Positions 24,101 to 47,486 of a DNA stretch of 64,000 nucleotides are shown here, piece by piece (positions within the stretch are counted from its first letter, which is position 1; the number at the start of each line of letters is the position of its first letter). Source of the DNA: Malacoraja senta. Its lineage: Eukaryota. Location of the stretch: NCBI GenBank assembly GCA_038087875.1, contig CM075990.1:13330001-13394000 (forward strand), read 5' to 3'. The notes under the pieces were generated by a model, which did no database searches, was not told the origin of the DNA, and saw only the letters and a list, made by a program, of their open reading frames with translations. A program made the position numbers and the translations under genes.

Positions 24101-27100
24101 CAAACCCATCTCAGCAGTCACTTTGTGAAATTAAGCAAAGCCATCGGGTGAAAGGGGAAAGATTAAAATGAATAATTAATTATTTCACATTAAAAATTAA
24201 AATGCAACTACTTATTTCCAATGCACAAACAGTAAATCAAAATTCTTTCAAATCCATGGGCAGTGGTTCACAAATTGAATTTTCAACCAAGCACACAACA
24301 AATTTTACTTACGTAAAATAACCAGGTGGCAATCCTGTTCCCCGTGCCCAGCTCTTTGAAAGCATCAGGTTCGTCTTTCTACATTGAAACAAGAGAATCT
24401 TTAACAGTTGTAGCTGTTGCTATACCTATACCATAGGCCGTGGCATTTTTCAATTTCAAGCATTAACAATTACTTAATGGACAATTTATGTACAATTCCT
24501 TTTTCTGCATTTTCGTGAGAAGCTCTAATGCATACATACTTTGACAAATGGATTCATTTATCTCGTAAAGTAGTAGATAAAGCAAATGTACATAAACAAA
24601 TATTTGCATATAATTTTTTTCGCAGACCTCAATTTGAGGGTTACAGCAATTTGTTCCAGTAGCACGATGCAGAGCAAGCAAAATTAAACCATGAACCAAC
24701 AACAAATTACTCAGCTTCCATCTCTGCATTTTGAATTCAAAAATTTCAGATCAGATTTCTGTTTCTCAGCTCTGATTCACTTGATGCAAGGTTATCAGAC
24801 CTAATTTGCATATTGTGTAGGAAGGAACTACATCCACCACTCTCTCTTAGGCAGGACCGACATCATTTGTCATTGGGCTTCTCCACCCTACTTTTTGCAT
24901 ATCTTTCATTCTCTCGTTTCCCTTTCCCATGACTATCAGGCTGAAGAAGGGTCTCGACCCGAAACGTCACCCACTCCTTCTCTCCAGAAATGCTGCTTGT
25001 AACGCTGAGTTACTCCAGCGTTTTGTGTCTATCAGTCATTCTCTTTATTGTCTGTGAAGCTTAATGTGCATGTTTTCTTACTTGCACAGTTCTGATGAAA
25101 GTTTTCGATCTGAAATGTTGATTTTGTCTCACTGCAGATGCTGTCGGACTCAATGACGACCTCCATTATTTTCTGTTTTGCAAGACGCATCCAGTGCTAC
25201 ATTGAACTGGGATTTGAGTCTGCCTTCCATCCTGCGTGTATTTTGAGTTACCTTCTGGATTTACGTGCTACTTCCCTTGCCACTATTCTCTTCACGATTT
25301 GTGCAAATCTCATCTTATTTTTAAGTTTACATCATTCAGGTCAACCATGCACCTGATATCTTATTATAACTTACTCATATGTAGACAAAAATGCTGGAGA
25401 AACTCAGCGGGTGAGGCAGCATCTATGGAGTGAAGGAAGAGGCGACGTTTCGGGAAGGATCTCGACCCGAAACGTCGCATATTCCTTCTCCCCATAGATG
25501 CTGCCTCACCCGCTGAAATTCTCCAGCATTTTTGTCCACCGATTTTTCCAGCATCTGCAGTTCCTTCTTAAACAAAACTTAATCATAAGTTGTTTTTCAG
25601 AGATTTCTGGTGGCCAACTCCTGTTCAATAATGGACACTTTCAAAAGCAACAAATAACATTCAAAAGCAAATTCGTGGTCCTAATCTCCAATTTATTATC
25701 AAGGGGAAGCATTTTCTGACCCAGAATCCAGAATCCCAGTGCTGGATTCTATCAAATGTTAATTTGAATGCATGGAAGGACTATAGTTGATGGCCTTTGG
25801 TGCTAATCAGGGTAATCTGTTATTTACCAAGAACAATGTGCAAAGCAACAGGCTTGTAATTTGAAACAGAATGTTTTTTGTTTTACAAAATATTGTTGGA
25901 TTTTGCATGGTTAATTTTGCATTAGCTCATGCCAAATGTTTGAACATTGCGACGAGGAACAAAAACCCACATTAGCAAGGTTATAATAATTATGCAGCAA
26001 GTGCCTGGAATATAACCAAGATCATTTGATCCATATAAAATTAAGCAGTCAGCATTAATAGGCAACATGTTGATCAACATGTGAGATATCACTACACCAT
26101 GAAAATTAGCTAATTAGAATTTTTTAACACAGTGATAATGAAATGCCAGCATGTCGAGAAGTAAAAGAAATGAAATACAGCAATGATCTCATCAATAATA
26201 CTGTGGTCAAACCATATCAGTCATTACTTCTCAGAGGTGTTGACAAACGGAATATCCATACGCTATTTATTAAAATATGCAGGTTTGACAACACACTCCA
26301 AAATCCAGTTAGCAAGTCAGTAAGGCAAAATGGTGGCCGATGCCAATTTTAAACTTATGGCATTCTCCCTCCACAACAGCAAAAACTATCACCAAGATTG
26401 CAGAGATAGAATGTTCTGGATTCACACTGATCAATCAATATGACTTTGACCAAATTTAATGCTGCCCTGAGAGTGACAGAAAGTAGAGCTTGGAAACAAA
26501 GCCATTTGGCCCAGCTTGTCCATGCTGATCAGTGGGCACCCTGCTGTATTAATCCCACCTCCCAGCACCTGGTCCACAGCTGAAGCAATTCAAGTGCCCA
26601 TTGAAGACACTTCTTCCATGCTATCAGCAACTCAGCTTCAACTACTACGTTTCTGGTACTTACCACTCTCTGGGTGAAGATTTCCCTTATACCCCCTTTA
26701 AATCTCTGCTCCTCTTTACCCTAAGTACGTGCCCTTTTATACCCCTCATAATTGTATATAGTTCAATCATGTCTCCTCTTCCACTCCCACACCTAGTTTC
26801 TCTAGCCTTTCCTCACAACTGATCTGCTCCATCCCAGACAACATCTCCTCAGCACCCTCTCCAATGCTATCACATGTTCCTACAGCAGGCTGATCAGAAC
26901 TGCAGGCCGTAGTGTGCAGCTGAGGTGCGACCAAGGTTTAAGAAAGTTGAAGCATAACTTCCCTACTTGTGTGTTCAATGCACTGACAAATGAAAGCCAG
27001 TATTCCGTATGCTCTCCTAACCTTGCGCAATGTTATTGATTAGGGCTGCTTTATCTATGCAAAAGCATTGCAGCGATGCAACTTTTGTGACTCTACTTGC

Positions 27101-30100
27101 CCGTGCAAAGTCATGATGAGGCTCATACTGCCCACCCACGCCATAATTAGCCACCTGAAAAAGAAATAAGTGGTGACAAAGAGTTGAAAAATAACACTTA
27201 CCCGTCCAAAATCAAAATGAGGTTCATACTGGCCCCCAACCCCATAATTGGCCACCTGTTCAAAATGAGAGGTTACAGAGAACCAGTCAAACGCTCAGTA
27301 TTTCTCAGCGAACAATTCACAGGATTAAGATAAAACCAAATGTATAGTTACACGTCAGTGGCACACAGGTTTACCAGTCATGACAGAGGCTTCTTTTAAA
27401 CTGGAGTTGGGATTTACACTTGGCATTGTATTTTAATTGCACTAACATCAACACATTAGACCTGTTCTAACAAAATCCAACATCTTGCATCTCCACAGTT
27501 AATCAGATTTTTCTTTTGCATTAATTATAATGATGGTTGAGGAAATACTAATGTTCACTGTTATATCATAACAGCAACTGTTTCATAGTCCAACTTCCTC
27601 CTGTGACAAAAAATAATCATGGACATGATTTAAGGTCCAGGCAAAGACAAATTTTCCCTGTCAAGCTAGTTTAAATGGAGTTTAATGTGAATATTTAATG
27701 TGCTAACATCATGGAGTAATAGCGATGGTACTGTAAACATAATGGAATATGCATCATCTTTATTGGTGAAAATTCTTCCAACATTTAAAATGAAGAATAT
27801 TCATGGGTCAGAGGGCAGTGGAGAAAAGTAACTTCCATTTGTAACTCCACAAATACTGCCACAAATTACCTCCATTATTTCTGCGTTCCAGAATCTCTGG
27901 TATTTTGCTTTATCTCAGGTACTGAAATTAGGTGGGACGCAGCCTTCAAGCCACTTACTTAATTAACTCTTTTCGCAAAGAATTCTACCTTAACTCAATG
28001 CTACTAGTTAGTTTAGTTTATTGTCACGTGTGCTGAGGTACACTGAAAAGCTTTTGTTGAACAGCTTTGTGGAGCACTGCAGTTCAAATTCTGCTAGTTT
28101 TTAAATGTATATGCACACCAAGTGTCTGTTGCTGTCATTCAGATAAATACTCACTGTCTTATTTATGAGGACCTAATCCCAGTTCTCCAAGATCTTTTTG
28201 CTCAATGTTCAGTTCAGCACCTACCTGTAGCTCTTCTGCTGTGGAAACATCAAGACCCGTGAGATCTTGTATCCGCTTGTTAATTTTGTTTATTACGGGA
28301 TCTTCATAACCTGACAGCCAAGCACTGGGCAGAAGCAAAAACATGTTCAAGTTAATGTCCTACATATTTTCACCTGTACTCTCATTTAATGTATCACAAC
28401 ACATTTCCTACCCGCGTTCATACATTCTTAACTAGTTGTAACTACGCACTTCAAAGTCTTAACCTAGTTAGATTTCTTCGGGTATGAAAATGATCAAATT
28501 AAATAATTTTAGAATGATCCTCAACAACATAAGATCTCCCTCGGCATTTTAACCCGTTAATCATTGCTTGGTATGGGCAGGGAGGTTAGTCCACAGAAAA
28601 GTTCTGATGAATGCAGATTCGTCTCAAATTTAGACAGCTACATTATTCAATGACCAACTCATGGATAAAAAAATCACAAATAATACCGGGGGAGATCAAT
28701 TTCATATTCCATATCATGCCCTTATGAAAAAGGCGGCAGCTATTTGGCCCGTCAAGTCTATGACAGGTCTCACTTTGGCCCATGTTAATCCTTTCACTTA
28801 TTTCCCCGATTCCATTAATTGTGCTCAGACGCCACTGTCACGGCACTAGGCATTCATAACACATCTACAATTACAGCTAAGTCAATATTCAAAGATAATA
28901 GAAACATAGAAAATAGGTGCAGGAGGAGGCCATTCGGCCCTTTGAGCCAGCACTGCCATTCATTGTGATCATGGCTGATCGTCCCCAATCAATAACCCGT
29001 GCCTGCCTATTCCCCATATCCCTCGACTCCACTAGCCCCTAGAGCTCTATCTAACGCTCTCTTAAATCCATCCAGTGACTTGGCCTCCACTGCCCTCTGT
29101 GGCAGGGAATTCCACAAATTCACAACTCTCCGGGTGAAAAAGCTTTTTCTCACCTCAGTCTTAAATGACCTCCCCTTTATTCTAAGACGGTGGCCCCTGG
29201 TTCTGGACTCGCCCCACATTGGGAACATTTTTCTGTAATGCTAACAATGTTTTCAGTTTCCTCCCACCCTCCAAAGACGTACAGGTTTGTAGGTTACTTG
29301 GCTTGGTAAATGTAAAAATTGTCCCTAGTGGGTGTAGGATAGTGTTAATGTGCGGAGATCGCTGGTCGGCGCGGACCCGGTGGGCCTGTTTCCGCACTGT
29401 ATCTCTAAACTAAACTACGGGAAGGAATTGTGTGTGGAGCGAGAGAGGAAGCAATGAGGAAAAGCTTCAAATTTAGTTTAATAATAATAATAATAATACT
29501 TTATTGATCCCCTCAGGGAAATTCAGAGAAATGAGAATAATGAGAAATACTAGGGGAAATGATCACCTAAGGTATAACCACACACAAATAAACCACAGAT
29601 AATTATCATTTCTTGATTACACTGATGTTGCTGCATCATCCTTTTCGGTTTTACTGAACAGTGTTTGAAATAATTGGAATAATTTAATTTTCTCACCACA
29701 TACAATAACAATGGAACTTGCTTACAGCAGATGTTCAATGACTTAAAAATACAAATTCCAAGTAAAAGACCATCCAATCTGGTTGCAACAGGTCTACCAG
29801 CCAACTCTATGCAATAAACTGCCTTCTGAGTTGGAGGCTTGTGACCCTAACCTCACTACAGAGATTTATATAATCTGGGTTGGTACTTAACTGATCATTG
29901 GGAAGGCACTTTGTAAATGATCTGATCAAGTGTCTCGAGATATTTTTATTACATTAAAAATGGTGGTTATTATTGTTTGAGAAGATGTTAAATAAAACCT
30001 ACTTGCCCTGTTAGTTTGGCACAATACTATTCAAGAGGTTTTTACTGGGTTGTGGCTAATAGCCATCTCTCAACAGGCATCATTACTATCAAGTTATTGG

Positions 30101-33100
30101 GATATTTATCATTGGCCATTTGAAAGGCCTTGTTTTTTGTGAATTGGCTGCTACATTGTCAAAATTACAGCAGTGACTCCACTTGAAAACAACTTCACTT
30201 TTTGTGAAGCATCTGAAAACACAAGGAAAGTGCACCTTAGCTGACTATACGTAGAAGCTTTACTGAAACGAATGGCATATATTTGAACAGTAACTTTGCA
30301 CTAGAATTAGAATTAAACATTGCCATCTCACTACTACCTGTACACTGTAAAGCAAGAGCGTGACACAATATGAAACAGCATGAAACGGTTTCAACAATAA
30401 ATACTGTGAATACCAGGAGAAATGCATTGCCGACAAACTATTTGCTTAGAGGAACTTCAGAGGTACTAGATGTTTGTCGAAAACTATTCCAATCCAGATA
30501 CCTGAAATCACTGAGAGCCAAACGTATATGAAATGTTCGTAATAAATACGTGCTGACATACATAAATAGCTGTTTTATCTCACTCTAAACTGACCTTAGA
30601 AGTGCAGTAAGCTTGAAATTAAGATTACATGATGGTAGCAGTGGAGAATGAGTGTATTCTTTGGGTTAAACTTTTTCAGGTGAAGCATTTCCATTTCAAG
30701 ATTCAATCGAACAAAACTTTCAGATGTCAAATGAATAAAGGACCATTGAATCATCGAATAAAAATGATAGCATTGTGAATACACTGAATTAATTTTGCAT
30801 GGGAACTAACTTGCTTGATCAACTGAAGGCATTCATACCTTTATTAGACCTGCACTCCAGTGCTGACAGTATGTCCCTCAAGTTCTCTGCCAAATAATCC
30901 AGCCCATAAATTCTAGCCTATACTTGTCAATTCAAAACCAGAGCTACATTTTATATACTTACTCAACTATTTGACATTTTGAAAGTTGAGTTTGTCATGG
31001 CATGTTTTTATGTTAGTCGCATTGGTAAATAAATATGCATGCCACAGCACCAACATCTGTCTGAATCTATATATAATTAAGAGCCTCACTTTTAAAACAG
31101 TTTGCGACCCAAGACTTCACATTAAATACTGAAGCAACTCAATGAACAATGAACTCAATGATCTTGAATTTCCATGCAAGAGCAAATAACATGAGTTTAG
31201 TTTGTTCCTATCCTGTGTCATTTCCAGCTTCTATGACAAAGTAGCAATCCTGATGGTGACGTACAGCAAGAAAAAAGATTATTTGTAGCTACTGAATAAT
31301 TTAATGCTATGAGGAAAATAAAAATAAAAATTAAAAGAATATCTGTGGGGAAGGGTAAACCTAAGGAAATGGATTTGGAGGCATACAGAAGTTATCTGAA
31401 TGGATATCTCTAATTAAAATTGCCTGCAGTTTTATAGACTGAACTAATATTATCAATCAACAATTGAAGTTGAAATGATTTTTATATGTCCATTCAAACA
31501 CACATTTAGATAATTCATACATTTATTTTTGTATGTTATATTAGCATAACTATGAAAAACAAAATTTACACTCCCATCAAAATAATCTCTGAATCCAACC
31601 AGTCCCAGAAATGTAGCCTTGCTCTCTTTGCTACGAATACTGTATGCCAACAAATGCTTGGGCTGTTGTCAGTCTCCGAAGGTGAACAGTCTCCAAGTTC
31701 TTCACTGTTCCAAGAAAATGACACCATAAACAATGTCAAATCAGGTACCTGGCTGCATAAACTACTGCATTTGATGAAGATAGATTCCCCTTTAAAGGAT
31801 AATGCTTTTGATTCAAGTAAAATACGAGGTTTCCTTACCTCGCTCCATTTCACAGCTGTTAAAATTATTTCCTGTTTTCTCTGAGCTTGAACTGCTTGCA
31901 TAGACACATAACAGAGCACAAAGTAAAATTAACTTAAGTCTTTGCCAAATATAAAGTGCTGCACTGCACACAGAATCATTTTCCATCTGTAATCTGTGTG
32001 CAGCAGGCAGAAATGCACATTCACATCAACTCTGGTGTGCACATTAACCTAACGTGCAATCTTGATAATATATTTAACGAATCTTTGCAAGAAAATTCGA
32101 GAGCAGCTGATTAAAACCATGATAAAATCTGTTGCACACAAAAACTCCCGACTCCAAGGTATTGAAAATAACTAACCATACACAGAAAGCAGAATTCAAA
32201 TCATCTTCAGAGATTCTGTCTAAAGTCTTACTGGTAATCCATCAGAAAATGGCCAGAACTCAGCTGTGTCAGGTCTCATTGGTTAGTATGAACCCTTATG
32301 AATAGATAAATCTAGCATCTACTTTTTCCAGGTAAACGTGATTAAAGGTGAACAGAACTGATATGGCCCTTCTCTTGGGCTCATTTGAATACAGTATGGA
32401 ATTTCACAGGTGGGAGTTTGCCACAAAGAGCGTGTGTTCAATCAAGGAATGTTTAGATTTCCTAAAGATAGTGTTATTTTGTTCACTGTGAAGGATTACA
32501 TCTCTGCGGCAATCTTTATTTTCATCCACGCCTTAAATAATGCGGCTGAGTAAGGTGGCTAATGTGACTCATTCAATTTCAAACTGCAAGGTAAATAACG
32601 TTAGAAATGACTGCAAAAGCATTTATCTAAAACAAAAAATTGAATACGAGCTAGCTATTCTATTGTTCCCAATCCTTGTCCTTAACTAGGCTGCATTGCA
32701 GCTGTAGACACAAAATGCTGGAGTAACTCAGCGGGTGAGGCTGCATCTATGGAGAGATGGAATAGGTGACGTTTTTGGTCGAGAGCCTTCTTCAGACAGA
32801 ACTGAAGACCCATCTTCAGTTGTAGATAGCATCCAAAGTGATTTTCAATTGTTAATTGGCTATCTACTCAAGAGTAGGTGCAAATAAGGTCTCTTCTCTA
32901 GGAGTCATCTCAAGGGCATGAGAGATCTTGGCAAAAAGATGCTTCAATAAAGCACAGGTGGCATGCCAAATGTCATGGAATTTGGTGTAGCTGGGCCATA
33001 CATTTGAATTGAATTGAATTAGACTTTATTATTGCACAGAGATAGGGTAAATGGTAGTTTTTGAACAACAGTAAAATCTGAAGAAGGGTCTCAACCCGAA

Positions 33101-36100
33101 ACATTACTCCAGAGATGCTGCCTGTCCCGCTGACTTACTCCAGCATGTTGTGTCCATCTTCATTTTAAACCAGCATCTGCAATTCCTTCCTACACAGTAA
33201 ATAACTTGTTCTTTGAATCTAAATGCAGTCCTACCCCCCAGTGGGTTGTCAGCCCAATGTCCTGAATAACTTTTATTTGCTGTTCTTTCATCACATATAT
33301 ATTTTACAAAGCTGGTGTCAAATTGCACACTTTACTAACTCCTAACACAGTGCTACTGCTTTTGGGAACACATCTACCATGTAAAAGGAGGGCTGCGTAC
33401 TTTAAAATAAACCAGCTCTGCAGATTTGTAAAGACAAATTCCTGGAACAAGTCAAGGTAAAAGGCACACTCAATATATCCAGAGTCCATAATGTTTTGAT
33501 CAGAGATTATCACCCTTGATCTCCTACATTAAAACTACAAAATTATTCTATTTTACTATTTGTGCAAGACAATCAGTCACACTTGCAAGTTTCCTGTGGC
33601 TGAAGGCAATTCCAAAATAAACATCAGTAAAGTACATGACAGTGAAGATATACAGTGTCCTCCATAATGTTTGGGACAAAGACACATCATTTATTTATTT
33701 GCCTCTGTACTCCACAATTTGAGATTTGTAATAGAAAAAAACATGTGGTTAAAGTGTACATTGTCAAATTTTAATAAAGGCAATATTTATACATTTTGGT
33801 TTCACCATGTAGAAATTACAGCAGTGTTTAAATAAATGATGGGTCTTTGTCCTAACCATTATGGAGGGCACTGTAAATATGGATACAGGATCTTCGGCCC
33901 AACTCGTCCAAGGTATGAACTGCCTTCTTAAAGGCCTGCAGTATGTGAATCAAAGATTTCTTTCAGTGCCACAGAAAATATTGAAGGAGTGATGATTTTC
34001 TTCCAAGTCAGGATTCAGGTATATTTGAAGGGGATGTCAAAATGGTGACTGGGGCAATTACAAAGCTCTACATAAAACACATTTAGGTGAATGTACTAAA
34101 AGAGGCTGCCCTTCTTTTTAAAGACATCTTAAATATTCCATCCTTCAACGGTAACAATAACGTGTAGTGAGATTTAGGTGGCTCCAGGATGAGGGTCAGC
34201 CAGCCATAGCTACCTTCATTATGTTGGCCAAGTTATCTTTTTTTTAGATGTGTTTACTGGCTTCCATCAGCCAATATGGTAACCAGAAGCTGGCTCAAGC
34301 TCTTTATTTTCTGCATATCAACAATATCTGCACTTTGCTGGAAAGAATGGGGTTTTCAGTCGATTGACACTCATCCCATAGCTCTCTGTTTAATCAGCAT
34401 GTCAAATAGTAAAGGTTTTCCCAAGGTTACCACATCTGAATATCAGCGAAGACCAGAGCTGAAGGCTTTCTAAACACAAGCTTTATTCTGAAATGCTGAT
34501 CACTGGTTGGAATCATCCACAAGCCAACAAAGCTGGAGATAAACCAGAGGTACTAAAACTATTTATGTAGACTAACAAAGTGTACACATGTACAGGAAAA
34601 TTACCAATCTAAGATCCCACTCAGCTCAAATTAAAAATGGAGAAACAAGGAACTGCATGCAGATGCTGGTTTACAAAAAAAGACAGTGCCTGGAAGACAT
34701 GGATAGATGTTGCTTCAGACTGATTGTAGTGGGCCCGGGATAAAGCTGGATTGGGGCAGTACAAACTCTGGCAGCTCTTGGTGGATACAGGTGAAGGGAG
34801 GTTTGAATGGCAGATGGGTGGACAAAGGCTAACAATGCAAAGGAGACAAAGAAGGTATAAGGTAAAGAGAGAAGTGAAATACGAAGCCAGAGGGGAAGGA
34901 TTAGAGGTATAAGGGGATGGGAGAAGGCAAAAGGGGGGGGGAGATTAGTTGGTGATATGGGTCACATCCCAGTGGGGCACAGGGAAGAGAGGGGGGGAAA
35001 AGGGGGGTGGTTTCCTATAATAAGAGAATTCAATGTTCATACCGTTGGGCTGTCAGCTGTCCAATTAAAGTTGCCCATTTATTTCCAGCTCTTGGCTGAA
35101 TGCTGTATCAGGCAGAAAGCCCTGGCAAGAATGTTTCATGTTCAAACTTCAGGTGCCACCCTTTGGCCAAAATTAAACATAAGAACTAGATGAATAGCGG
35201 ATAAGCAGAATAATGTAACAAGGCCACTAATTAATATCAGTATCGACACAAAGTACATTCCATAGGGAGAACCTGAACAGATCCTTAAAAAGTATTCACA
35301 TTAGCATTGAAACACAATGGGCAAAACCACAGAGATCAGTAAGTAAAGAAACAAACTTCAGTTCATTAATTATCCCCAGTTAATTTCTGCAAGATACTTC
35401 CGATAATGCTGTGCAGCTTGTTTTACTGCACGTCAGAAGTTATTGCTAAGAATCCCCTGCAAATTTTTGACCAACAATCAAAAATCACTCCTGTAGCTAA
35501 AGTGAAAAGACAAATGGGCACAAGAAATTTAGATTTATATATCCAAGTTTAAAGCCAGTGGGAATCTTTCAATGACCTGAAACATTAACTCAATTTCTCT
35601 TTACACTGATGCTGCCTGATTTGCCCGAATTTTTTAAATATTTCAAATTTTCAGCAACTATATACATCAGTCTGTTCGAGATTTCTACAATAATGTGATG
35701 GACAGTTAACATATTCATTATAGGGCAGAACTGGTTGGTATTGATTTATTATTGCCATGAGCACTGAGATACAGTGGAAAAACTTGCCTGCCAACCAGTC
35801 CAATTATACTGTACACGAGTACAATCAAACCACACACAAGTAAAACCCCAAAATACCAGAGTACAGAATAAGTGTTACAGCATTACAGTTACAGAGAATG
35901 TGCAGATAAAAGTGCAAGCTCTTTAATGAAGTAGGTACTGAGATTAAGGTTCTAAGATTTAGAAAAGAATGAGACACTGTAAATTAATATCCTTGCATCC
36001 AATGAAACCGTCATTGTTGAAATGTAAAAAACTATTCTTAATTGCACAGAACAAAGTCCCCATATTGGTGGTCACTGATCCATAGAGGTAAACCGCGCAG

Positions 36101-39100
36101 AAACAGGCTCATCTGTACAACTCGTCCATGCCGACCAATTGTCTAACCGAGCTAGTCCCCTGTGCCAGCAAGTTGGTCTTTGTGATATTAATTAAGGGAA
36201 TAAATACTGACCAGGAAAACCCTTGTGCTTTTCTTTAAACCATATAATAGAAATGTGTCTGGTTGTGCTACATACAGGTATGTTTCTGATACAAAAGGAG
36301 CTGATAAATTATAAATAAAAATTCTGACCTCAGGAGGCCAAGGAGGTATATGGGAAAACAATAGTGGATAAAGGGCGAGTTATGTGTTACTCAGAAAGTG
36401 ATATGGCCAGTTGCATGGAATAAGTGGAGTTTTGATTTCATTACCCACGGTGGCACAGCGGTAGAGTTGCTGCCTTACAGCGCTTGCAGCGCCGGAGACC
36501 TGGGTTCGATCCCAACTACGGGTGTTGTCTGTACGGAGTTTGTACGTTCTGCCCGTGACCACGCGGGTTTTCTCCGAGATCTTCAGTTTCCTCCCACACT
36601 CCAAAGACGTACGGGTATGTAGGTTAATTGGCTTGGTGTTTGTGTAAAATTGTCCCTAGTGTGTATTGGATAGTGTTAATGTGTGATGATCGCTGGTCAG
36701 TGCGGATATGGTGGGCCAAAGGGCCTGTTTTCGTGCTGAATCTCTAAACTAAACACCTGAGATTTCATGCTGACTCATCGTGAATAGACGATGCATTGTG
36801 TAATTTGACGAGGCACCAACTCTTTACCGAGAGACATCACTTTAACAATGGGCTCAACGGTCTCTTTCTGTTTTGTAAAACCACCACATGATCCAGATAC
36901 CCAAGAAATGAATTGATGGGAAAATTATCACTTCTATTAATAATATATCCAGAACCTTGTAGGGCTAACTACGGAGTTGATTTTCTCGGTTGAAACATTT
37001 TTAGAGCTGGACCTCCTGTGTAGACTCTGCACACTGTAATTACTGTTCCCTTTGGACTATGGGGAGCTACTTCCGCTGTAATAAATTGTTATTTTCCTTA
37101 CAAAAATAAGAATTTTAATTATACATTACACTCTACCAAAAATGCTAAAGAGCCAAGAATGTTGTGCTTCAGTTGCACTTTCTACAGGGACAATAGTCCA
37201 CCATATGCAGCAATTAGTCTTGTTAACCTTGTAACATCATATTGATATTCTGCTGTAATAAATATGTAAATTCATCCATAACCTACATTAGAATAATAAT
37301 ACTAGAAAATATCAAATGTTAAGACAGTAAAGTTGCAATGAATAATACAATCAGAGATCAGAAATGCATTAGGTATACCGATACACATCATCTCACTTTC
37401 CAAACACAAGTCACACTACTAACAAAACATTCACAAATATTAAGGGAACAAGACCAACCTGTTTGGAAGATAGTTCCCTGGGCTAATTTAAATTGATGAA
37501 TTCAAACTGTGCATCAATTTCTGCTTCTTCGCAGTCATTGAAACCTCATTCTGACCAATTAACCAAAATCCTCAAGCTCTGCAGTTTGACTATTTGGTGA
37601 TTCCAGGCACTGGATAATGAGTCTTGCATCATTTAGTAAATGCTCTTCGAAATCTCAACAGAATGTGTTGAGGAGTTGGACAAAATAAAAACCCATCCTT
37701 CATAACAGGACAATGAAGCTTCTCACACCTTCAATGCACGTGGCGGTAGTCTTTACCCTTTGTTGTTGCACTGTTAGAGAGTACCTCATACCTTCCCCTT
37801 ACCTTTTGGAGACTGTAAGTTGCAACAGTCAACTGGCCAGTCACAGGGTTATGCACTGTGGCACGCTTCAGCTACAGAAAGAGAAAGGGCATATTTAATC
37901 CTGGAACAGCCAGATCACCACTCATTAGTGGAACTCTGGAAGCTTCCGATTGGTCAGGATATGTGAAAATGGAGAAGGGCAAGTACTGCAAATGGGGCTG
38001 CGTTCCAATTCAATGTCCTTTCACTTTTCAAAATTTGGAGAAGTTTTACCTCGTAGTGAGGTTAGGAGGAATGGATGACTACACTGATTAACTGCTTGCA
38101 TACACTCGAACCCAATGGTTCTGTCAGCATATTTTGCATTTCATCAATGTGTTGAATAATTCAGCCTTTTTCCTCAGTCGTCATCTCTTCACCTGGTTCA
38201 CGTCATTGGATGCCAGCTTCCAAACATGCCTGGTCTGAACCAGATGCAGCAGCCTCGCTGCGAAGAGGAGCTGCCACAGCTCTCGCTTACCTTTTGCTTA
38301 TTCTGTAATGAGCTGTCTCCAGAACTCCAGTTATTGGGTTAGAAATGGTGGCTCGTCTCAGCTGTGGAGCCAACCAATCAGAAAAAAAGCAGAGATTATT
38401 ACCAGCTTGACTGGATGCAAAACAGGACCAATCAGAATCCTTCCAGTGGGGAAAGAACTAAGCCCATCACACTGGAACGACCATTCTTGGGTCCCTTCCC
38501 CAACACTCTGTGGCTCGTGCAGCTAACAGCAACAGCCACATCTCGGTAAAGCTGAAATTCATGGAAAGCCCCTTTGAAACAGGTTAACTATTTCAGAATT
38601 CTTTTCAAACATTAATAACAACCAGGGGATGAATTTTGCAGTTTTACCGCAAGTTTTCACTGAAATAACAACAACAAAAAATGTCTGTGGTAAACAATGA
38701 TAAGAAGTGCTGGTTCACTCAGGGACAACAGCAATACAAAAAAAGCAGGAAAGATGACCTTAGAATACAATGCAATTTCATTTTATCATTAAGTAATTTA
38801 AAATTGAATGTGCTAGCAATTTTTGTGCCACTTTGTTGCAATAATTCCATTTCATAATTTTAATCCAGCTCTGCTGATTTGGAGTATATCAACATTTATT
38901 GTCACTCAATCATCAATCTTACTTGGGAAGTCAGAGGGTCGGAGTATTTTAACTGAATGTGCTGCATGGAGACAAATGGAACCAATAGCTTTTACAGATC
39001 CTGTATTTTCTTTATTACTTTACTTAATTTTCAGGATCTGGCATCATTGACAAGGCCTTCATTTATTACCTGCCCTCAAATTGCTTGTAAGATGTGCTGA

Positions 39101-42100
39101 ATCACTTTTTTGAACAGCAGTCCTTCTGTTAGTACTCCATCAGTTACACAAGCTTCAAACACACCTTCGCTAAATTAGAAGTCTTCCTGCAGCATCTCAA
39201 TCAAAATCCAATACTGAAGGTTATGGCCTGACATTCGTTAACCATTAATGAGATGAATTTTAGATAAGCTGAAAAATAACGACTCTATTGTTTTTCTGTG
39301 ATTGAGCCCAAAATAAAAATCTAAAAAAATTTGTATATTCTTCTTTTCAGATTGTCTCACTTACAGAACACGGAGCTAGAAGGCAGCCCAGAGATTTGTA
39401 TCCAGATCTTGAGCTAGAGTTACTTCTATGCATTGTATCCTCGTGGCTGTTCGCAACCAACCTAATATTACACTGTCAGATTATGTTTAGTGTAGAGACA
39501 CAGCAAGGAAATGGGCCCTTCAGCCCACGCCAATCATCGATCACCTGTTTACACTAGTTCTATGTTATCCCATATTCGCATCCACTTCCTACACATAAGG
39601 GACAATTTACAAAAGCCAATTAACTTACAAACCCACACTTCTTAACGATGTGGGTGAAAAATCCCCTAAACTTTAACCATTTCCAACAAGAACCACAGCA
39701 ATGCATAGATTAAGGGCTGGTTCCAATAAATGAAATTGGACCAAAAGAAAGTAACACAAAACCAGTTTTGCTGAAGGACAATATCTCTCTGGATTATAAC
39801 TGCTGTCTCCCCAAATGAGCTGGAAAACTAAGGCACTAGACTACCTTGGATAATGTGACATCTTACCCGTGGCTTTGCTAATTCTTTCACACGCTCAATT
39901 TCCTGGTCGGAAATGATATCAATGAAACGAATGATGCGAGGTTTGTCCCATTCATCTTGCTGTTTCACAGGCCTCAGAATGTATACTGGATTTCTGCTCG
40001 CGTCCGAATAACGGCAGAAGAGCTTTTTCTGTCGTCGAGGAGTCTGCACAGAAATAAAAAATGTTGATTCATGTCAAATTAGAACACCCATGTCAAAATT
40101 ATTCAAAATTATATGATTTAACTGAGGCAGACTCTGACTGAGTGATTATTCCAGCAGCCTGTTCAAATAAATGATGATAAACTAGTGAATGAAAGATGAC
40201 AGATTTAATTTTGTGAGTAAAAATGCTATTTTGAAGTACATAGAAATAATCTGGATGTAGATCCATCGTTTAAGATTCCAAAAGCAACCGAATAATCAAT
40301 GGCATGCACAGAGAACATCAGGAGGGGAGGGAATGGGAGGGGGGGGGGGGGAGAAGATAAACTGATTGTACTTACAGCAAGGACATAATAAGTTATATCG
40401 AGTCTGTATTAGTTTAATAATTGTTTATACACAAGTTAAAATACTGATTATATAGAATATGGACATAACTAGCAAGCAGAGTGCCAGTGCTATCCTTTAT
40501 CAGCTTCAAAATGGTGGCGATAAGCCACTTTCCTGAACTGCTGCAACCATTCTGAGAAACAAAACACCTACAAGGCCCTTTAGTAGGAAGGTACTGGATT
40601 TAGAAAATGCAACATAGGTGACTGCCAACCAAGCAACAAGAAGAAATCTTTCATTAGCAGGAAAATCAGTAATAGAAGGACCCCAAATTAATGAAAGCTG
40701 TTTGGAGAACAGAAGGGTGATTAGGGTAACTTATTTGGTTCATCTTGGAATCTAAAAGAGGGCTGGAAGCAGATTTTATTAGAGTCATATAGTGTGGAAA
40801 CAGGCCCTTCGGCTCAAATTGCCCACACCGGTCAACATGTCCGATCTACACTAGTCCCACTTGCCTGCGTTTGGCCCCTATCGCTCTAAACCTGTCCTAT
40901 TCATGTACCAGTCTAATTGCTTCTTAAACGTTGTTTATATGTTGCTTAAATATTATACTTGAAAGAGGAAAACTGTGCAAAGCTAAGGGAAAGGTGGAAA
41001 GATGAGAAACTGATAGGATAGCTCTTCAACAGATATGGCAGTTACATTGATGAGCCAAACATGTTTTTGTGAAGTTCAATTTTACAACTCTAAAATAAGT
41101 GATATCTTTAAGCACAATGTTACTTCACTGACAATGGTTATCTTATTTAGACATAGAATTCAATTTTGTTTGCCAGATTAACCCCTCGTATTTATCTCTC
41201 TGCAGACTACCAGCGTTAGGAATTTGGGCATTAATTCTTATGACTGTAAATATGCTTTGTTTGCAGTCAATCAACTATGCTTAGCGATAGCTGAGAAAAG
41301 TCAACAATGGGAATCACATCTGCCCTTCTCTCACTTGGCAACTTTCAAAGTATGGCCATTTATGTGTTTACACTTAAAAAAAATAAACAAAAGAACAGAT
41401 AGCATTTATTTATAAAGCAGTTTTTATTTTACGATCTTGTGATGATCCAAAATCTCAGTCAATATGCATCCAATTAAGAAATCCTCAAATGTAGTCGCTA
41501 CTGCAAAGAAACAAGGCAGCCAATATGCAGACAGTAAGCTCTCACAACCAGCAATAAGATAAACAACAGATCATGTGTTTTATGGTGATGTTGTCTCAGG
41601 GACAAATATTGGCCTGTTGACTATAAAAACTCCCATGGTCTTTGAAAACTGCTGTTTACTTTTTGTGAACGGCAGTTTCCACAGAATTGCTGGCCTAGTT
41701 GAAAAGCTTAAATATATGTTGCAGGATCTGACGACAGATGAGGGGATTATCACTGGAGAAAGACTGGATTTCTTGAATCGTTGCCTTCCCTCATTTATGT
41801 GGTAGGTGCCCAACTTGTCACTTGTTTGCTATAGGGTTGGCTTCAGAAGTAAAAGGAAATTCACAAATCCACAGAATTCAAGAATCCACCTGATTCAAAT
41901 AATTCACTTACCAATTTGATACCTTCTCCTCGGCACAGCTTTTCATATTTCTGTCTCTCGGGCAGGTAATCCTTTGGACGGCCTTTCTTGGTCTCTGAAG
42001 TACTCCCTGCTTTGCTTCCTTGAGTTTCATTTGACTTTTTTAGCTGCTCAGATTTCATATACTCGAAATATCTCAGGTTCCCATTGGCTCGCTGATGTTC

Positions 42101-45100
42101 TGGATCTATAACATTTAAAGTCAGTGTATAACTTTCACAGGCATCTTTTCTTGTACAGTACTCACATTTCAACGTAAATACAGAAGACATTTCTCTGAAC
42201 ATCCTTACCCAGCTTCAGCATCATTTTTGTGAGTTCCAGTGCCCGATCCAGGTCACCTTGCTGGTACACTGAATAACTCAGGTAGTCCAGTATGGTGATT
42301 TTGTCTATATTGGATACCTCACCAGTATCCAACTGCCTCAGTGCTTGGTCCATCCACAGTTCAGTGTGGTAGTAATCTGCATCTGAGTAAGCTATTTTCC
42401 CAAGCTCAAAGCAGTCCTCTACTGAGAGTGATGTTTTATGCTTCACACCTGAGAGAGAGGAAAAAAAAGAGAATCATGCATTTGTATCTCGGCCATAGAG
42501 TGAACAGCACTTGTGATCTGTTCAGGAAGGAACTGCAGATGCTGGTTTATACCGAAGATAGACACAAAACGCTGGAGTAACTCAGTAGATCAGGTAGCAT
42601 CTCTGGAGAGATGGAATAAGCGATGTTTTGGGTCGGAACCCTTCTTCAGCCTTGTTAAGCCTTGTTAAGCCTTTTCATATTCCCACCACCTCCTGTTCTA
42701 AAGCTAAAATTACTTTGATCCTATTGCCATCTGCTCAAAAATCTACTGTCATCAGCTAGTGTCACTATAAAAATGTAAAATCCTTTGCGCCACATACCAG
42801 GCAGGTTTCCTTGAGAGATGGTGTCTGCATCCAGTTTGTACGTGTCCTGGAGACGCAGCAAGGCTTTAGCAGCTCCAGTCTGGTCATCATCATTAGGGAA
42901 GTACTGTCGCTGGATGGTGAGATTAGAAATGAATCCTGAAAAGATATCGGTATCAATGCGTCAAATGTAAAATTAAAGATTGCGTTCAAACTTTTCACAA
43001 GTCAAAGTGGCTGCAACAACAAGGTCTGCTGCGGTTCATTGCAGTGAGGCAGGCCAGCTGCTCCAAACATGCAAGGAATGAGCTGAAATTGTTAGCCCTT
43101 TCACATTCCTACCGCCTCCTGTTCTAATTTACAACGGCTGCTTTTCTACCCATGAACAGACATCCTCTGTTAAAGACTTCCTTTACTTGATTGCAGCAGC
43201 AGTGCAAACACCCTGATTTTTTGTTTTACGTTTCCTCCCTTTCCTCTCTTCACCTATGCTCAACTTCTATGGTGACCTACATCAGGTTTGTGAATGAGAA
43301 AGAGACTGAATGACAGGAGGTTGGTGGGCTGGGTGTCACCAATGTAGGGGAAGCCACAGAGAGCACAGAATGCGATAGATGAGGTTTCAAACTTGTTCAT
43401 CAAAGTTGATTTCTAACTTGCGAGTTCCAACGAAAGCTCTTCAATTTGAAATTGTATTGTAATTTGGGTCAAACAATCTTTAACTTATACCATCTACTAT
43501 TCCTTGTCATTTACTTTCAGAAACATTAGGGGTATTTTTTGGTTGTTGTTATTAGTTAAATAAAATTATGTGCAGGGGTGGCGCAACGGTAGAGTTGCTG
43601 CCTCACAGCTCTTGCAATGCTTGAAGACCCGGGTTCGATCCAGACTATGGGTGCTGTCTGTACGGAGTTTGTAGGTCCTCCCCGTGACCACGTGGGTTTT
43701 CTTTGAGATCTTCGGTTTCCTCCCACACTCCAAATAAGTACAGGTCTGTAGTTTAATTGGCTTGGTATAGGTGAAAAAATTGTCCCTAGTGTGTGTATGA
43801 TAGTGTTAATGTGTGGGGATCGCTGGTCAGTACGGACTCAGTGGGCTGAAGGGTCTGTTTCCATGTCTCCAAACTAAAATTGTGTATTTTCTGACTATGT
43901 TGGGGCTTTCATCCAATTAGAACATGCAGTTGGATGGCTCACAATTTTAATTCCTCAGCTGTTGTCACGCCAGCCCAGTGGACGTAAACATCTTAACGAT
44001 CAACCAAGATATGGATCCAAATTAGACACATTAATCCTAAACTATCCATGTTTACATTCACAAAAGACATGAATCCTTAGCAAAGGGAAGATTGGAATGT
44101 GATTTTAACTGTGCTGAGCAGCCAAGACTGTGCAAGGACGGCCAACCTAAATCTCTGACTTTTTAAGGAGACAGCTGCTATGTTGCTTTCAAGCTTCAAA
44201 AATACAAAACTAAACACGAGTGCTAAGATACATGTGATTAAAAAATCTGACCAAAACGCTCAAGAATTATGCTTCCTTTTGTGAAGCTCTTGGTTTCTTC
44301 ATGCCAGACTCTCCACCCAATTTGCAAAATGAACCGTTCCCATGCCTTTTGCTGAGTAACCTTTTCATCTGCCAAATGAGGGTTTATTGAGATCTAATGC
44401 AGTCATACTGTTGGCTCCTGTGCCGCTGTGCTTGGATTGCTCCTTCCACATTTAGAGACTCCTACTTTTTAGGAATAACTATTTCAAGATGAATTCCAGC
44501 TGCTTAAACTGGAATTTCTTTATTGGATGAAGTACAGATGTGAACTTGGAGGGTGGAGCTTGTGGCACGTCAGAGCCAAAATAGGAAAAGGCTGCAAATT
44601 CCTGCAAAGGTAATTATTTGCAAAGGTTTTTAGGATGAATGTTTCTAACAGCTAAAGGCTTGATTCAGCATTGGATGGCAATTCTTCAAATGCACTCCTG
44701 ATGAATGAAAATCTGAAATGAGACACTGGACTCATTCCCGTCAGGAAATATGAAACATAGAACTATTCATAAAAAATAAATCTTCAGAGTTTTGTTTTTC
44801 TATAATACACATATTACAAAGTTAATTTTAATATCAGATCTATACATAGACTTCGATAGTTTTGTTTGTAAGTACTGCTGAACTTTATTTTTTTGTAAAT
44901 CCATTGGTGGCAAGTCATGTCTAGTGATCCCATAGGTGCAGGACCTACTGGCAAGAAAAAGGAAATAACACCACATCAAATAGAGCATGAAATCCCACAC
45001 CTAAAATAACAAGTTGTGTTCTTAAATCAAATAAAAAAGATCTTCAAAAGGAAACACAGAAGGCAAACATCTGCCTGTGAATAATACTGGATGCAACGGT

Positions 45101-47486
45101 GATAAAGTCATAGTATGACGTTGCACGGTGCACAGCTGGTGATCTTTTACGTTATTAATTCTAATTGTGGCTTCATGTCAAACATTTCTAAAAACAATAA
45201 AAATTAACGGTGTCATTGTAATTAAAATGCAAATCTCCATAGAATCCAGGCTCTTGTCAAAATGCCACTGGCAAATGCCAAGAATGGGAAAACAAGATGG
45301 TAATTACTCTGAACAAAATGACCATATTACCCCGAAACAAAAATATTAATTGCTTTTGTCATGTTTGTAACCTAGGTTGCAAGTAGATTTTTAAATGATG
45401 TTTCTCTTGTCTCAAAGTAAGGAGACACTCATTCAAATTTGAACTGAGATTATATCACTTCACCCGAATAGTAGTGAATTTTTGGAATTCTCACCAAAGA
45501 GGGTGGTGGACACTCATTTGCCAAATATATTAAAGCCAGAGATCAGATTGTTTTTGGATATTAAGGAATGTATGCAACATGGGGCTAGTACAGGAACGTG
45601 ATAATGGGGTAAATTATCAGCAAAGGTCTTAATGAATGACAGCAGACGCAAGGAGCCTTTTCCTTTTGTTCTCTCTTACACTTTGCCACTCAAGGCAACA
45701 CATTTCTAGAAAAAGGACAAACATTAATTAATTTCTTGCATATGCACTCAGGATTCAAGGATTTAGGCTAAAGTCTGAAAAGGCTACAATGCTTCGAAAA
45801 AAGGTCACAGAATGGATTGCTCTGGCTTTGCAGACAATAGTGATGCAGTGAGTGAATTGATGGGGAAAAACCCAACAAATGGCAAAGGGACAAAGAGTTA
45901 GAGGAAGACAGTATTGTCAATTGGTCTACTTAGAAGATGATTTACCACTAACCATCTGACATATCTTTGAGGACCAGATTTTCCAGCTCCAACCACTCCG
46001 TGTTCAATCGTTTCATCAATTTAAATGCATTTACTGGATGGCCAAGGAATCCTTCTGGATCTTTTGTAGCTGTCTCTGTAAGTAGGTCCAGTTTTTCGGC
46101 CCACCTAGTAATGTTACAAAGAAATTACCTCTGGGATCTAATAAAATGTTTTACTGGTAATTGTTTAATGTACAAGCTCATTAACCACTCTAAAGGAGAT
46201 TAAAAAAAATTAAGAACCAAATGTTGTGTAATGAAAGCTTTCAAAACTCTAAACAATTTGCCCACCGTTTGATTTCTCCTAGTTTCCTTTCTTCAGCTTT
46301 GATGTAGTCTTTCAACGAGGTCACCAGATCTTTCTCTGTGTATAGCAGATCTGTCATCTGTCCTACTCACAGAAAATAAAACGGATTATACAAGCTATTC
46401 AAGGAGTTTCATTTCAAGAAAATATATACCTCTATAAAATAATTTTGGGAATAGTTATTTTAGCATACTGAAACATAGTCATTTTAAATGGCTCCAAAAC
46501 TGCATTTCTTCTCAGACATGTGAATTATATACACAGTCCATTATCTGACTGCCTGCTCCCATTTGGGAATCAGATTTCAAATTCTCTTTCAATTCTCACA
46601 ATATAATTGCTTCGACCCACACATCATCGCAATAAGTTAATTAAGGATAATGTCATGGTGGAACTGTGTGCAACCATGGAACTTTGGACTGTCGAAGCAA
46701 TTGAAATTCTGCAGTCAACAGAATTGCAAGACGACACAGTTCCGCACGTTTACACTTCGACAATCCTGGTTGCTGCTTGATGCAACAAAATTGAGTTGTT
46801 GACTATTCATAGCAATCTACAACACACCCAGGCACGATGAGAGGATAAAACCCCCAGAAAATGGTGGAAAAAATGCAGGCGACATCAGCAAAATCCAAAC
46901 CAGTCAACATTTCAGGCATTTTTTATTTTTATTCCAGAGTGTCAACATTTGCTGTGTTTAAAAAAAAAATCCATTAATGAAATGATCACTCTTTCTTTAC
47001 ATTGAAAGCTCCAGTCTCCTTCATATAATACTGCTTAGTGCTTTGTTTTACAATTTCATGTGTTTCTTATCTGGTTCAATAGCTTAGTTCAGGTGGTTAC
47101 AGAAAATGTGCCTGGACAGTTAACATGAAATATTCTTTAACAACTATGATTAAAAAAATGCTGGAAACACTCAGTCCAGGTAGCACCTGAGTTGAGTGAA
47201 ACAGGGTTAACTGCCTTAGACCTGTGAAGTATATGCCGTTTAATTTTAGATTTCCAATATTAATTAGTGAGACATTGGCCATTGGTGTGAACTTTAATAC
47301 AAGATCCTTAGCTTTAACCTTCTGTAAATGACTCAAATTATAGAGAAATAATATATTTTTATGAACAACTAATACTGAAACAAAAAAAAGAGAAAGATCC
47401 CGCTTACCAATTGATGTGTAGAAGTCGTCATGCGCCTGGATGATGGAGACCAGGACTAAAATGCACCAGATTTTTACACATGCCAT
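15101..47486 (-). CDS. P4HA1: Prolyl 4-hydroxylase subunit alpha-1, spliced CDS join(47486-47408,46362-46266,46104-45953,42935-42798,42448-42209,42105-41912,40043-39867,38361-38291,28324-28225,27255-27202,24378-24313,19971-19903,16629-16533,15171-15101)
   Basis: 14 GT-AG exons with matching phases sum to 1605 nt = 534 aa + stop. Translation matches vertebrate P4HA1 throughout: signal peptide, TPR-like substrate-binding domain, EPHFD, TRHAACP, SNKW; IATWLFY and LRRATISNP distinguish it from P4HA2. Confidence 0.97.
15800..16455 (+). mobile_element. CR1 LINE 3' fragment in the last intron, with nested short insertion near 16170-16248
   Basis: LYKTLVRLHLE..VQFWSP..KLERVQRRF. Confidence 0.85.
16533..16629 (-). 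CDS. P4HA1: P4HA1 exon 15 (GSAVFWYNLFASGEGDYSTRHAACPVLVGNKW), distal Fe-binding His
   Basis: 97 nt, AG/GTGAGT. Confidence 0.97.
18375..18866 (+). mobile_element. Penelope-like element 3' end (GIY-YIG C-terminus, CT-rich UTR, terminal repeat with decayed hammerhead)
   Basis: PVAKHFNSPSHSHTDLSVLGL..RKLEEQHLIF..GMNIDFSNFK* followed by the short repeat unit. Confidence 0.85.
19903..19971 (-). CDS. P4HA1: P4HA1 exon 14 (MSDVTAGGATVFPEVGAAVWPQK)
   Basis: 69 nt, AG/GT, GGATVFP motif. Confidence 0.97.
22100..23310 (+). mobile_element. Old, decayed CR1 fragments interrupted by the insertion at 22642-22916
   Basis: Degenerate CR1 motifs (gaggatttgagtac, gagaatctttggaa, ccatgatctcatt); boundaries approximate. 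Confidence 0.5.
23537..23742 (+). mobile_element. Penelope 3'-terminal fragment with hammerhead core (23618-23645)
   Basis: 10-bp TSD AACCCTACCA at 23527-23536 and 23743-23752. Confidence 0.8.
24313..24378 (-). CDS. P4HA1: P4HA1 exon 13 (KDEPDAFKELGTGNRIATWLFY)
   Basis: 66 nt, AG/GTAAGT. Confidence 0.97.
24815..25033 (+). mobile_element. Penelope 3'-terminal fragment with intact hammerhead core (24941-24968)
   Basis: CTGAAGA-A-GGGTCTCGACCC-GAAA-CGTC. Confidence 0.75.
25380..25575. mobile_element. Fold-back Penelope-derived short element
   Basis: Inverted arms; near-perfect 12-bp TSD AACTTA(C/A)TCATA. Confidence 0.78.
27101..27154 (-). CDS. P4HA1: P4HA1 duplicated exon 12b (VANYGVGGQYEPHHDFAR), putative mutually exclusive alternative with GC donor
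   Basis: 54 nt, same phase, acceptor atttctttttcag, donor CGG|GCAAGT; differences from 12a are mostly synonymous. Confidence 0.85.
27202..27255 (-). CDS. P4HA1: P4HA1 exon 12a (VANYGVGGQYEPHFDFGR), Fe-binding HxD
   Basis: 54 nt, gaacag acceptor, CGG|GTAAGT donor. Confidence 0.96.
28225..28324 (-). CDS. P4HA1: P4HA1 exon 11 (SAWLSGYEDPVINKINKRIQDLTGLDVSTAEELQ)
   Basis: 100 nt, phase 2 to 0, AG/GT. Confidence 0.97.
28900..29233 (-). mobile_element. CR1 LINE 3' end
   Basis: SRTRGHRLRIKG..FFTRRVVNLWNSLP. Confidence 0.88.
29253..29416 (+). mobile_element. 5'-truncated HE1-like SINE
   Basis: V domain and tail. Confidence 0.8.
29960..30220 (+). mobile_element. Ancient Deu-domain SINE remnant (AmnSINE/SacSINE-like); related copies near 1420-1475 plus 5921-6110, 17700-17900, 41470-41720, 57575-57790, 62130-62640
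   Basis: aattggctgct..ttacagcagtgactccacttgaaaa resembles the Deu core as I recall it; boundaries approximate. Confidence 0.5.
33076..33193 (+). mobile_element. Penelope-derived short element
   Basis: ACAGTAAA duplication at 33068-33075 and 33194-33201; begins at the CTGAAGA core. Confidence 0.7.
33653..33873. mobile_element. Tc1/mariner MITE, 221 bp
   Basis: TA|CAGTGTCCTCCATAATG...CATTATGGAGGGCACTG|TA; about 45-bp TIRs, TA TSD. Confidence 0.9.
34640..35060 (-). mobile_element. Penelope 3' end, decayed
   Basis: GA-rich UTR and gagaattcaatgttcataccg, the reverse of the GMNIxFS C-terminus. Confidence 0.65.
36446..36753 (+). mobile_element. HE1-like V-SINE
   Basis: Full length with A/B boxes and tail. 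Confidence 0.88.
37803..37871 (-). CDS. P4HA1: P4HA1 mutually exclusive exon 10 homologue (LKRATVHNPVTGQLTVATY...), 69 nt instead of 71; may extend to 37792 via a second donor
   Basis: Strong acceptor tttctctttctgtag, donor AAG|GTAAGG; homologous to the LSRATVHDP-type exon; lacks one AG in TACAG(AG)TCTCCAAAAG. Confidence 0.8.
38291..38361 (-). CDS. P4HA1: P4HA1 mutually exclusive exon 9 (LRRATISNPITGVLETAHYRISK)
   Basis: 71 nt, ccacag acceptor, AG|GTAAGC donor; matches the LRRATISNP isoform. Confidence 0.95.
39485..39655 (-). mobile_element. HE1-like SINE 3' part
   Basis: Reverse complement of V domain and tail. Confidence 0.7.
39867..40043 (-). CDS. P4HA1: P4HA1 exon 8 (TPRRQKKLFCRY...ELAKPR)
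   Basis: 177 nt, phase 0/0, AG/GT. Confidence 0.97.
41912..42105 (-). CDS. P4HA1: P4HA1 exon 7 (DPEHQRANGNLRYFEY...YEKLCRGEGIKL)
   Basis: 194 nt, AG/GT, ORF 41861..42202. Confidence 0.96.
42209..42448 (-). CDS. P4HA1: P4HA1 exon 6 (VKHKTSLSVEDCFELGK...ELTKMMLKL), peptide-substrate-binding domain
   Basis: 240 nt, AG/GT, ORF 42162..42446. Confidence 0.97.
42798..42935 (-). CDS. P4HA1: P4HA1 exon 5 (FISNLTIQRQYFPNDDDQTGAAKALLRLQDTYKLDADTISQGNLP)
   Basis: 138 nt, AG/GT, LRLQDTY motif. Confidence 0.97.
43576..43878 (+). mobile_element. HE1-like V-SINE
   Basis: Full length with A/B boxes. Confidence 0.85.
45953..46104 (-). CDS. P4HA1: P4HA1 exon 4 (WAEKLDLLTETATKDPEGFLGHPVNAFKLMKRLNTEWLELENLVLKDMSD)
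   Basis: 152 nt, AG/GT, HPVNAF motif. Confidence 0.97.
46266..46362 (-). CDS. P4HA1: P4HA1 exon 3 (QMTDLLYTEKDLVTSLKDYIKAEERKLGEIKR)
   Basis: 97 nt, AG/GT boundaries, phase 1 to 2. Confidence 0.96.
47408..47486 (-). CDS. P4HA1: P4HA1 exon 2, coding part (MACVKIWCILVLVSIIQAHDDFYTSIG, signal peptide); exon begins at 47517
   Basis: Acceptor tttgcag at 47518, Kozak GCCATCATGG, donor G|GTAAGC. Confidence 0.92.

Follow-up and report, generated by a model that had tools for sequence, protein, structure and literature searches.

A 2-nt deletion that probably disables alternative exon 10 of P4HA1 in the skate Malacoraja senta

P4HA1, which encodes collagen prolyl 4-hydroxylase alpha-1, carries a pair of tandem alternative exons, numbered 9 and 10. 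Here we analyze P4HA1 of the skate Malacoraja senta, a single gene on the minus strand of a 64,000-nucleotide (nt) stretch of the genome (NCBI GenBank assembly GCA_038087875.1, contig CM075990.1, positions 13,330,001 to 13,394,000 of the forward strand), which we call the window and whose first letter is position 1. In this gene exon 10 has lost 2 nt, and the deletion is confirmed as real and not an assembly error. The explanation that we regard as probable is that exon 10 was disabled only recently and now amounts to a poison exon, the inclusion of which would give a substrate of nonsense-mediated decay (NMD), with the enzyme being made from exon 9. On this view exon 10 is not an evolved regulator; the case is a new instance of a known event, the loss of one alternative of a tandem-exon pair. 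The features on which this rests are the following (a slash marks the splice point in donors and acceptors):

39867..40043, minus strand: exon 8, the upstream constitutive exon, 177 nt, joint at 39867
38361..38291, minus strand: exon 9, the intact and probably mutually exclusive partner, 71 nt, LRRATISNPITGVLETAHYRISK, donor AAG/GTAAGC
37871..37803, minus strand: exon 10, the alternative exon, 69 nt instead of 71, encoding the hairpin loop that binds substrate and the beginning of the strand after it
37812..37813, minus strand: 2-nt deletion junction, TACAG^TCTCC, against TACAGAGTCTCC or TACAGAATCTCC in relatives (AGAATC in Rhinoraja, AGAGTC in Pristis)
37797..37802, minus strand: proximal donor GTAAGG, then a G run; GT at 37802-37801, U1 duplex -10.0 kcal/mol, use of which frameshifts exon 11
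28225..28324, minus strand: exon 11, 100 nt, out of frame behind the 69-nt exon 10, with TGA at 28306-28304

The mutually exclusive P4HA1 exon 9/10 pair is documented (PMC9676403, PMC11868403, PMC8373072). In human P4HA1, two homologous exons at this place are used mutually exclusively (Helaakoski 1994, as cited in PMC9676403; PMC11868403), and the choice between them is among the oldest tandem-exon substitutions in animals and among those detected most consistently, one of the few events present in every catalogue of such substitutions, with equivalents of the two exons even in nematodes (PMC8373072). The window exons resemble this known pair in lying in the same gene, at the same place after an exon ending ...AKPR, and in being tandem and homologous, with LxRAT at the start and YR[VI]SK at the end, encoding the substrate-binding hairpin loop. 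Exon 9 is located approximately 420 nt upstream of exon 10, and its protein sequence is identical to that of exon 9 in sharks, salamander, alligator and lizard. Exon 10 (LKRATVHNPVTGQLTVATYSLQK, acceptor ...tttctgtag/CTGAAG) is where the window departs from the known pair: at 69 nt rather than 71 it cannot yield the normal isoform, and the equal length and phase that the two exons have in relatives is replaced by 71 versus 69 nt. The original prediction, made from the DNA letters alone, had exon 10 at 69 nt with a proximal donor AAG/GTAAGG that frameshifts into exon 11; our reading of the minus strand agrees, and the coordinates, sequence, frame arithmetic and exon 11 start at 28324 that it gave are all correct. 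Because the partner exon 9 is intact, a lesion in exon 10 is tolerable. The papers searched hold no description of a lesion like the 69-nt exon 10 for any species. In P4HA2, exons 12a and 12b are alternative exons that, as Nokelainen et al. 2001 is cited in PMC9676403, also rewrite a substrate-binding loop of the catalytic domain, but there the gene and the loop (betaII-betaIII) are different and both alternatives are intact.

To place read evidence on the lesion, read-derived (Logan) contigs of four runs were compared with 37400-40100: X1 and X2, two samples of organism A, which is the window species; X3, from organism B; and X14, from the related organism C. The X1 contig, at a word depth of 28.5, spans 37400-39543 with 0 differences and 0 gaps relative to the window, and the X2 contig (depth 3.4) spans 37400-38444, again with 0 differences, and is likewise gap-free across exon 10. 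A shared departure from the assembly at 40057 shows that these contigs are not copied from it; X2 also has a single-nucleotide polymorphism of its own relative to X1 at 38650. In organism C the contig over 37752-38320 has CT inserted behind 37812, that is AG on the minus strand, which restores TACAGAGTCTCC and the 71-nt YRVSK version. One option in the original prediction had been a consensus error in the AGAG dinucleotide, to be recognized by reads with the 71-nt version. What the reads of the species returned was the window sequence over exon 10, and this option is refuted: both read-built contigs carry the 69-nt version and no alternative. That the true exon of the animal is nevertheless 71 nt long is now extremely improbable; an AGAG dinucleotide repeat is a context of long-read consensus errors, and at 40057, which lies in an A run, X1, X2 and X3 do all depart from the assembly, but the contigs of X1 and X2 show the 69-nt version within more than 1 kb of sequence free of differences, and no variant contig was reported.

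Whether the deletion is a segregating allele is a question of frequency, not of mechanism. It could be heterozygous or of low frequency in the sequenced animals, with the species still making the normal exon-10 isoform, and such a state would fit the fact that just two samples, both of one study, were available, the low depth of X2 (3.4), the loss of one branch of a heterozygous bubble in Logan contigs and the lack of decay in the flanks, which points to a very young event. Yet both samples have the deletion, their difference at 38650 means that they are not the same haplotype data, and at a depth of 28.5 X1 had no reported contig containing the CT insertion. We therefore consider a segregating allele quite unlikely.

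Comparison with relatives suggests how recent the event is. Public gene models or loci show an intact exon 10, with YR[VI]SK, in Leucoraja, Rhinoraja, Pristis and five shark species, and the public models of Rhinoraja, Leucoraja, Pristis and sharks include both exon-9 and exon-10 forms. The exon-10 form reads ...GKLTVATYRVSK in Leucoraja erinacea, ...GQLTVATYRISK in Rhinoraja longicauda and ...TVHDP[LV]TGQLTVATYRVSK in Pristis pectinata, Scyliorhinus torazame, Heptranchias perlo, Stegostoma tigrinum and Chiloscyllium punctatum. A comparison with sister species had been proposed along with the prediction, and its outcome is an intact 71-nt exon both in organism C and in the public relatives. 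The Rhinoraja and Pristis loci were aligned to the window at the DNA level. All of the remaining exon 10 bases (69/69) are the same as in Rhinoraja, the missing pair being the sole difference, and four bases differ in Pristis. Identity to Rhinoraja is 94–99% for the block from exon 9 to exon 10 and 99% for the block upstream of exon 10, as against 65–81% in the distal intron, a pattern that points to strong former constraint on exon 10 and its flanks. As the flanks and the remaining exon 10 bases are unchanged relative to Rhinoraja, the deletion is derived, recent, lineage-specific and very young. It seems to have taken one unit of the AGAG run, the usual signature of slippage. The upstream block is as follows:

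37872..37957, minus strand: acceptor, polypyrimidine tract and intronic block of approximately 85 nt upstream of exon 10, from the alignment with Rhinoraja and Pristis

Across this block the window, Rhinoraja and Pristis agree at every base but 37892, where the window stands alone, and the block could be a regulatory element of exon choice. At 37892, which is 21 nt before exon 10 and in branch-point range, the window has A, and Rhinoraja and Pristis have C; this lone change might matter for exon 10 inclusion.

The consequence of the deletion for the message follows from the reading frame. Behind exon 10 the sequence continues as GTAAGGGGAAGGTATGAGG, and exon 8 joined to the 69-nt exon 10 and exon 11 reads ...TYSLQKCLAVRL and then the TGA of exon 11 (...SLQKCLAVRL*). 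The premature stop is codon 389, 7 codons into exon 11, and because five exon junctions lie downstream of it, the mRNA with the 69-nt exon 10 is a predicted NMD substrate under the standard rule. Other ways of repairing the frame were tried and rejected: inclusion of exons 9 and 10 together gives TGA at once, skipping of both results in a frameshift, and the sole other in-phase GT candidate inside the exon, at 38 nt, would delete half of exon 10.

The sequence of events that we favor starts with the recent loss of AG from the short AGAG run in exon 10, most simply by replication slippage. Because the acceptor is perfect, the upstream element conserved and the donor strong, the spliceosome should still recognize exon 10 wherever it is normally chosen. 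The exon-10 mRNAs would meet the stop in exon 11 and be removed by NMD, and active enzyme would for that reason come only from exon-9 mRNAs, which at the sequence level encode an intact 534-aa protein. A weaker GT, 11 nt downstream of the donor, could give a minor in-frame product with an 80-nt exon. In RNA-labelled contigs of organism C (one run), the exon 8-exon 9 junction, 39867>38361, is present at a depth of 217, and the exon 10 region is represented by an unspliced contig only, at a depth of approximately 6, the intron level; being one sample of another species, this weighs little. A run search with the last exon and the 3' untranslated region returned RNA runs from relatives only, and X24, a run of the same study, contains no query word.

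Poison exons, in which alternative splicing is coupled to NMD, are known for example in SR-protein genes. Exon 10 is like them in that its inclusion introduces a premature stop that lies well before the final exon junction. Classical poison exons, however, are conserved as such and autoregulated, whereas exon 10 of the window was coding until very recently and induces a stop in one lineage only. A second option in the original prediction had been that exon 10 was converted to a poison exon that tunes P4HA1 by NMD. The part about the stop position fits: the TGA lies more than ~50 nt upstream of the last exon junction. The part about adaptive tuning is without support, and the stop-inducing state is not conserved. 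In its full form this explanation holds that the frameshift was selected, since exon-10 inclusion lowers P4HA1 output via NMD in certain tissues or conditions, and the strong, conserved splice signals that exon 10 has kept, together with the effect of hypoxia on exon choice in human cells (PMC11868403), would suit it. But evolved poison exons conserve the stop-inducing state, and here organism C, Rhinoraja, Leucoraja, Pristis and the sharks all have the coding 71-nt exon. Moreover, the change is one slippage-type event with no accompanying changes, and P4HA1 is essential in mouse (PMC9676403), which makes tolerance of a lost output likelier than selection for it. We hold adaptive tuning to be very improbable.

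The GT downstream of the proximal donor needs closer consideration, as it could mask the frameshift:

37786..37802, minus strand: 11-nt extension (37802-37792) and distal donor GTATGA (37791-37786), U1 duplex -5.7 kcal/mol, giving an 80-nt in-frame exon

The distal GT at 37791-37790 (AAG/GTATGA) preserves the frame and is reached without a stop, 11 nt past the proximal donor. The resulting 80-nt exon has the same phase as one of 71 nt and is stop-free, giving a 537-aa open reading frame (ORF) that reads ...TYSLQKVRG-SAWLSGYEDP (SLQKVRGSAWLSGYEDP). The position, phase and reading of this donor stand as originally predicted, but the label 'strong' does not: its U1 duplex energy is -5.7 versus -10.0 kcal/mol at the proximal donor, and the other scored P4HA1 donors (exons 8, 9, 11, 12a and 12b) range from -8.3 to -13.3. 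The two sites thus lack the comparable strength of an alternative 5' splice site pair, and they also lack its conserved second site. In Rhinoraja the distal GT is at +15, with an in-frame TAA within the extension; in Pristis the spacing of the donors is the same as in the window and the GT is absent at the distal site; and in organism C the distance between the two donors is unchanged, the 8 gap letters of its contig all lying elsewhere. The distal GT pre-dates the deletion, because it is found in Rhinoraja, and organism C has no indel between the donors. It is a cryptic GT of the skate lineage that came to restore the frame by accident.

The spacing in Rhinoraja longicauda (locus L001, ~12090-12100) is due to an extra GGAA between the donors (GTAAGG GGAA GGAA GGTATGA), which moves the cryptic GT to +15 instead of +11. 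We considered the 4-nt difference as a compensatory deletion in the window (2 + 4 = 6) and rejected it, as the short spacing in Pristis and organism C indicates an insertion in Rhinoraja.

Cryptic or tandem 5' splice sites that restore the frame after a mutation are established in disease genetics. The window is like such cases in having an in-phase GT a few bases downstream that could mask a frameshift, and unlike them in that the authentic exon 10 donor is undamaged and the stronger of the two, so that nothing forces a switch. A G run right after the proximal donor usually favors the upstream site; when both of two donors are occupied, the downstream one can be favored. A GT that restores the frame without a stop, lies within 11 nt and pairs with U1 at least this well occurs at ~1.5% of random window positions, and one of the same kind after strong GT sites at ~5% of positions (n = 61), figures that are not strong evidence, as several kinds of rescue could have been sought.

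Any enzyme made from the 80-nt exon would be altered at a conserved place. The sequence YR[VI]SKSAWL is invariant in every full-length P4HA examined, from insects, lancelets, a brachiopod and starfish to vertebrates; the backbone of this alignment came from a one-exon representative-protein search, in which invertebrate proteins and fragments predominated. Aligned with the algal enzyme (PDB 2JIG, 3GZE), YRISKSAW pairs with IRTSTGTW, and the Arg of YRxSK does align, as had been suggested, with the RTS motif of plant and algal prolyl 4-hydroxylases (P4Hs), being the Arg of IRTST in the algal enzyme. In P4H-TM, this Arg and the Trp six residues later are conserved active-site residues, and the Arg contacts the first lid residue, reaches the substrate through water and stacks on the catalytic Tyr (PMC7948501). 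When the 80-nt form is anchored on the conserved Trp, Lys stands at the Arg position, Arg at Ser and Gly at Lys, Val is kept and the lid is three residues longer. The third option of the original prediction, a rescued 80-nt isoform lacking the conserved Arg, is accordingly sound in its frame arithmetic, but the Trp-anchored alignment places a Lys, not a gap, at that position. The change is heavy, and activity of the enzyme is doubtful.

Useful splicing at the distal donor would give the 80-nt exon and an active, altered enzyme of 537 aa with ...TYSLQKVRG-SAWL at the base of its hairpin loop, with NMD clearing the proximal-donor product and leaving the 80-nt form as the only stable exon-10 mRNA. 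The regained stop-free frame speaks for such a rescue, as do the low frequency of comparable sites (just ~1.5–5% of positions), the replacement of the conserved Arg by Lys with Val kept, and the possibility that the downstream donor wins when both are occupied. All the same, we think it unlikely: U1 pairing at the distal donor is much weaker, the G run usually favors the upstream site, the distal GT is older than the deletion and so no response to it, Pristis is without that GT, and the motif that would be broken is invariant from insects to vertebrates and includes an active-site Arg. Neither YSLQK nor KVRGSAW occurs in any of the proteins retrieved for comparison, and a search for short RNA-derived protein fragments over exons 8-13 returned no skate fragments. 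A slimmer chance still is that the deletion and the pre-existing cryptic donor have together made a new exon-10 variant that is the sole stable exon-10 message, its lid extended by three residues with Arg changed to Lys and Ser to Arg.

We thus prefer a freshly disabled exon 10 with the enzyme made from exon 9, and some points weigh against this. Organism B (X3), the closest relative, has no contig over 37400-38481 and hence none on exon 10, which leaves organism C and the public skate models as the only limits on how far the deletion extends across the phylogeny. A dropped bubble branch in the Logan contigs can hide a second allele, which bears on homozygosity and fixation. We infer exon-10 inclusion, NMD and donor choice in Malacoraja senta from the genomic sequence. 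Finally, a nearby frame-restoring GT is uncommon by chance, which lends some weight to rescue having aided the survival of the deletion.

A frameshifted exon 10 beside an intact exon 9 is a natural isoform knock-out, and as such a way to ask what the role of the isoform is. If the deletion is fixed, it would follow that at least one vertebrate with a large cartilaginous skeleton to build can do without the exon-10 enzyme. If, on the other hand, the 80-nt enzyme is active, it would be a natural re-design of the substrate lid of a collagen prolyl hydroxylase and a worked example of an alternative-exon frameshift absorbed via splice-site choice. There is also a consequence for annotation, since gene predictors will drop exon 10 or invent the 80-nt form to hold the frame.

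The remainder of the gene is intact. Its exon series was found by a stop-to-stop scan of the minus strand, with boundaries set on GT-AG sites:

15101..47486, minus strand: P4HA1 coding region, 15 coding exons, start codon at 47486 and stop at 15101

All introns are GT-AG except for a GC donor at alternative exon 12b. Spliced from the window with exon 9, the coding sequence of 1605 nt gives an uninterrupted protein of 534 aa. The exons match Pfam PF08336 P4Ha_N (E 7e-11) and PF23558 TPR_P4H, the peptide-substrate-binding TPR domain (E 2e-30), and the catalytic domain is complete, with EPHFDF or EPHHDF, STRHAACPV and the HxD...H iron ligands present. For the Rhinoraja orthologue, the catalytic domain gives a match to PDB 7ZSC (E 5e-104). 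Protein identity is 95.4% to the Leucoraja erinacea model, 94.2% to that of Rhinoraja longicauda, 89.6% to Pristis pectinata and 85–88% to sharks, and the matching skate proteins bear the names alpha-1 or alpha-1b, which indicates orthology to P4HA1 and not to P4HA2 or P4HA3. An Rfam search of 36000-40500 gave no match, and the other ORFs around exons 9 and 10, on either strand, are just short chance ones.

Intron 8 contains a SINE-like (short interspersed) repeat at 39525-39633, apparently very high-copy and common to related species. Its word depth lies at 10^5 to 10^6 in the three runs of genomic DNA, against several thousand in the RNA-labelled one, and many contigs break inside it. The assembly reads A on the plus strand at 40057, where X1, X2 and organism B (X3) read T. 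This position falls in an A run, 14 nt before the acceptor of exon 8, and the A represents a minor assembly mistake or else an uncommon allele in the exon 8 polypyrimidine tract. Farther along the gene, exon 12 (54 nt, HxD iron ligands) is duplicated within 27101-27255 on the minus strand, the two copies lying 47 nt apart, one with HFDFGR and a GT donor and the other with HHDFAR and a GC donor. The public models of Rhinoraja choose one copy or the other, and in the Leucoraja models X3 and X4 the GC donor is read through into the intron (ARASRVT...).

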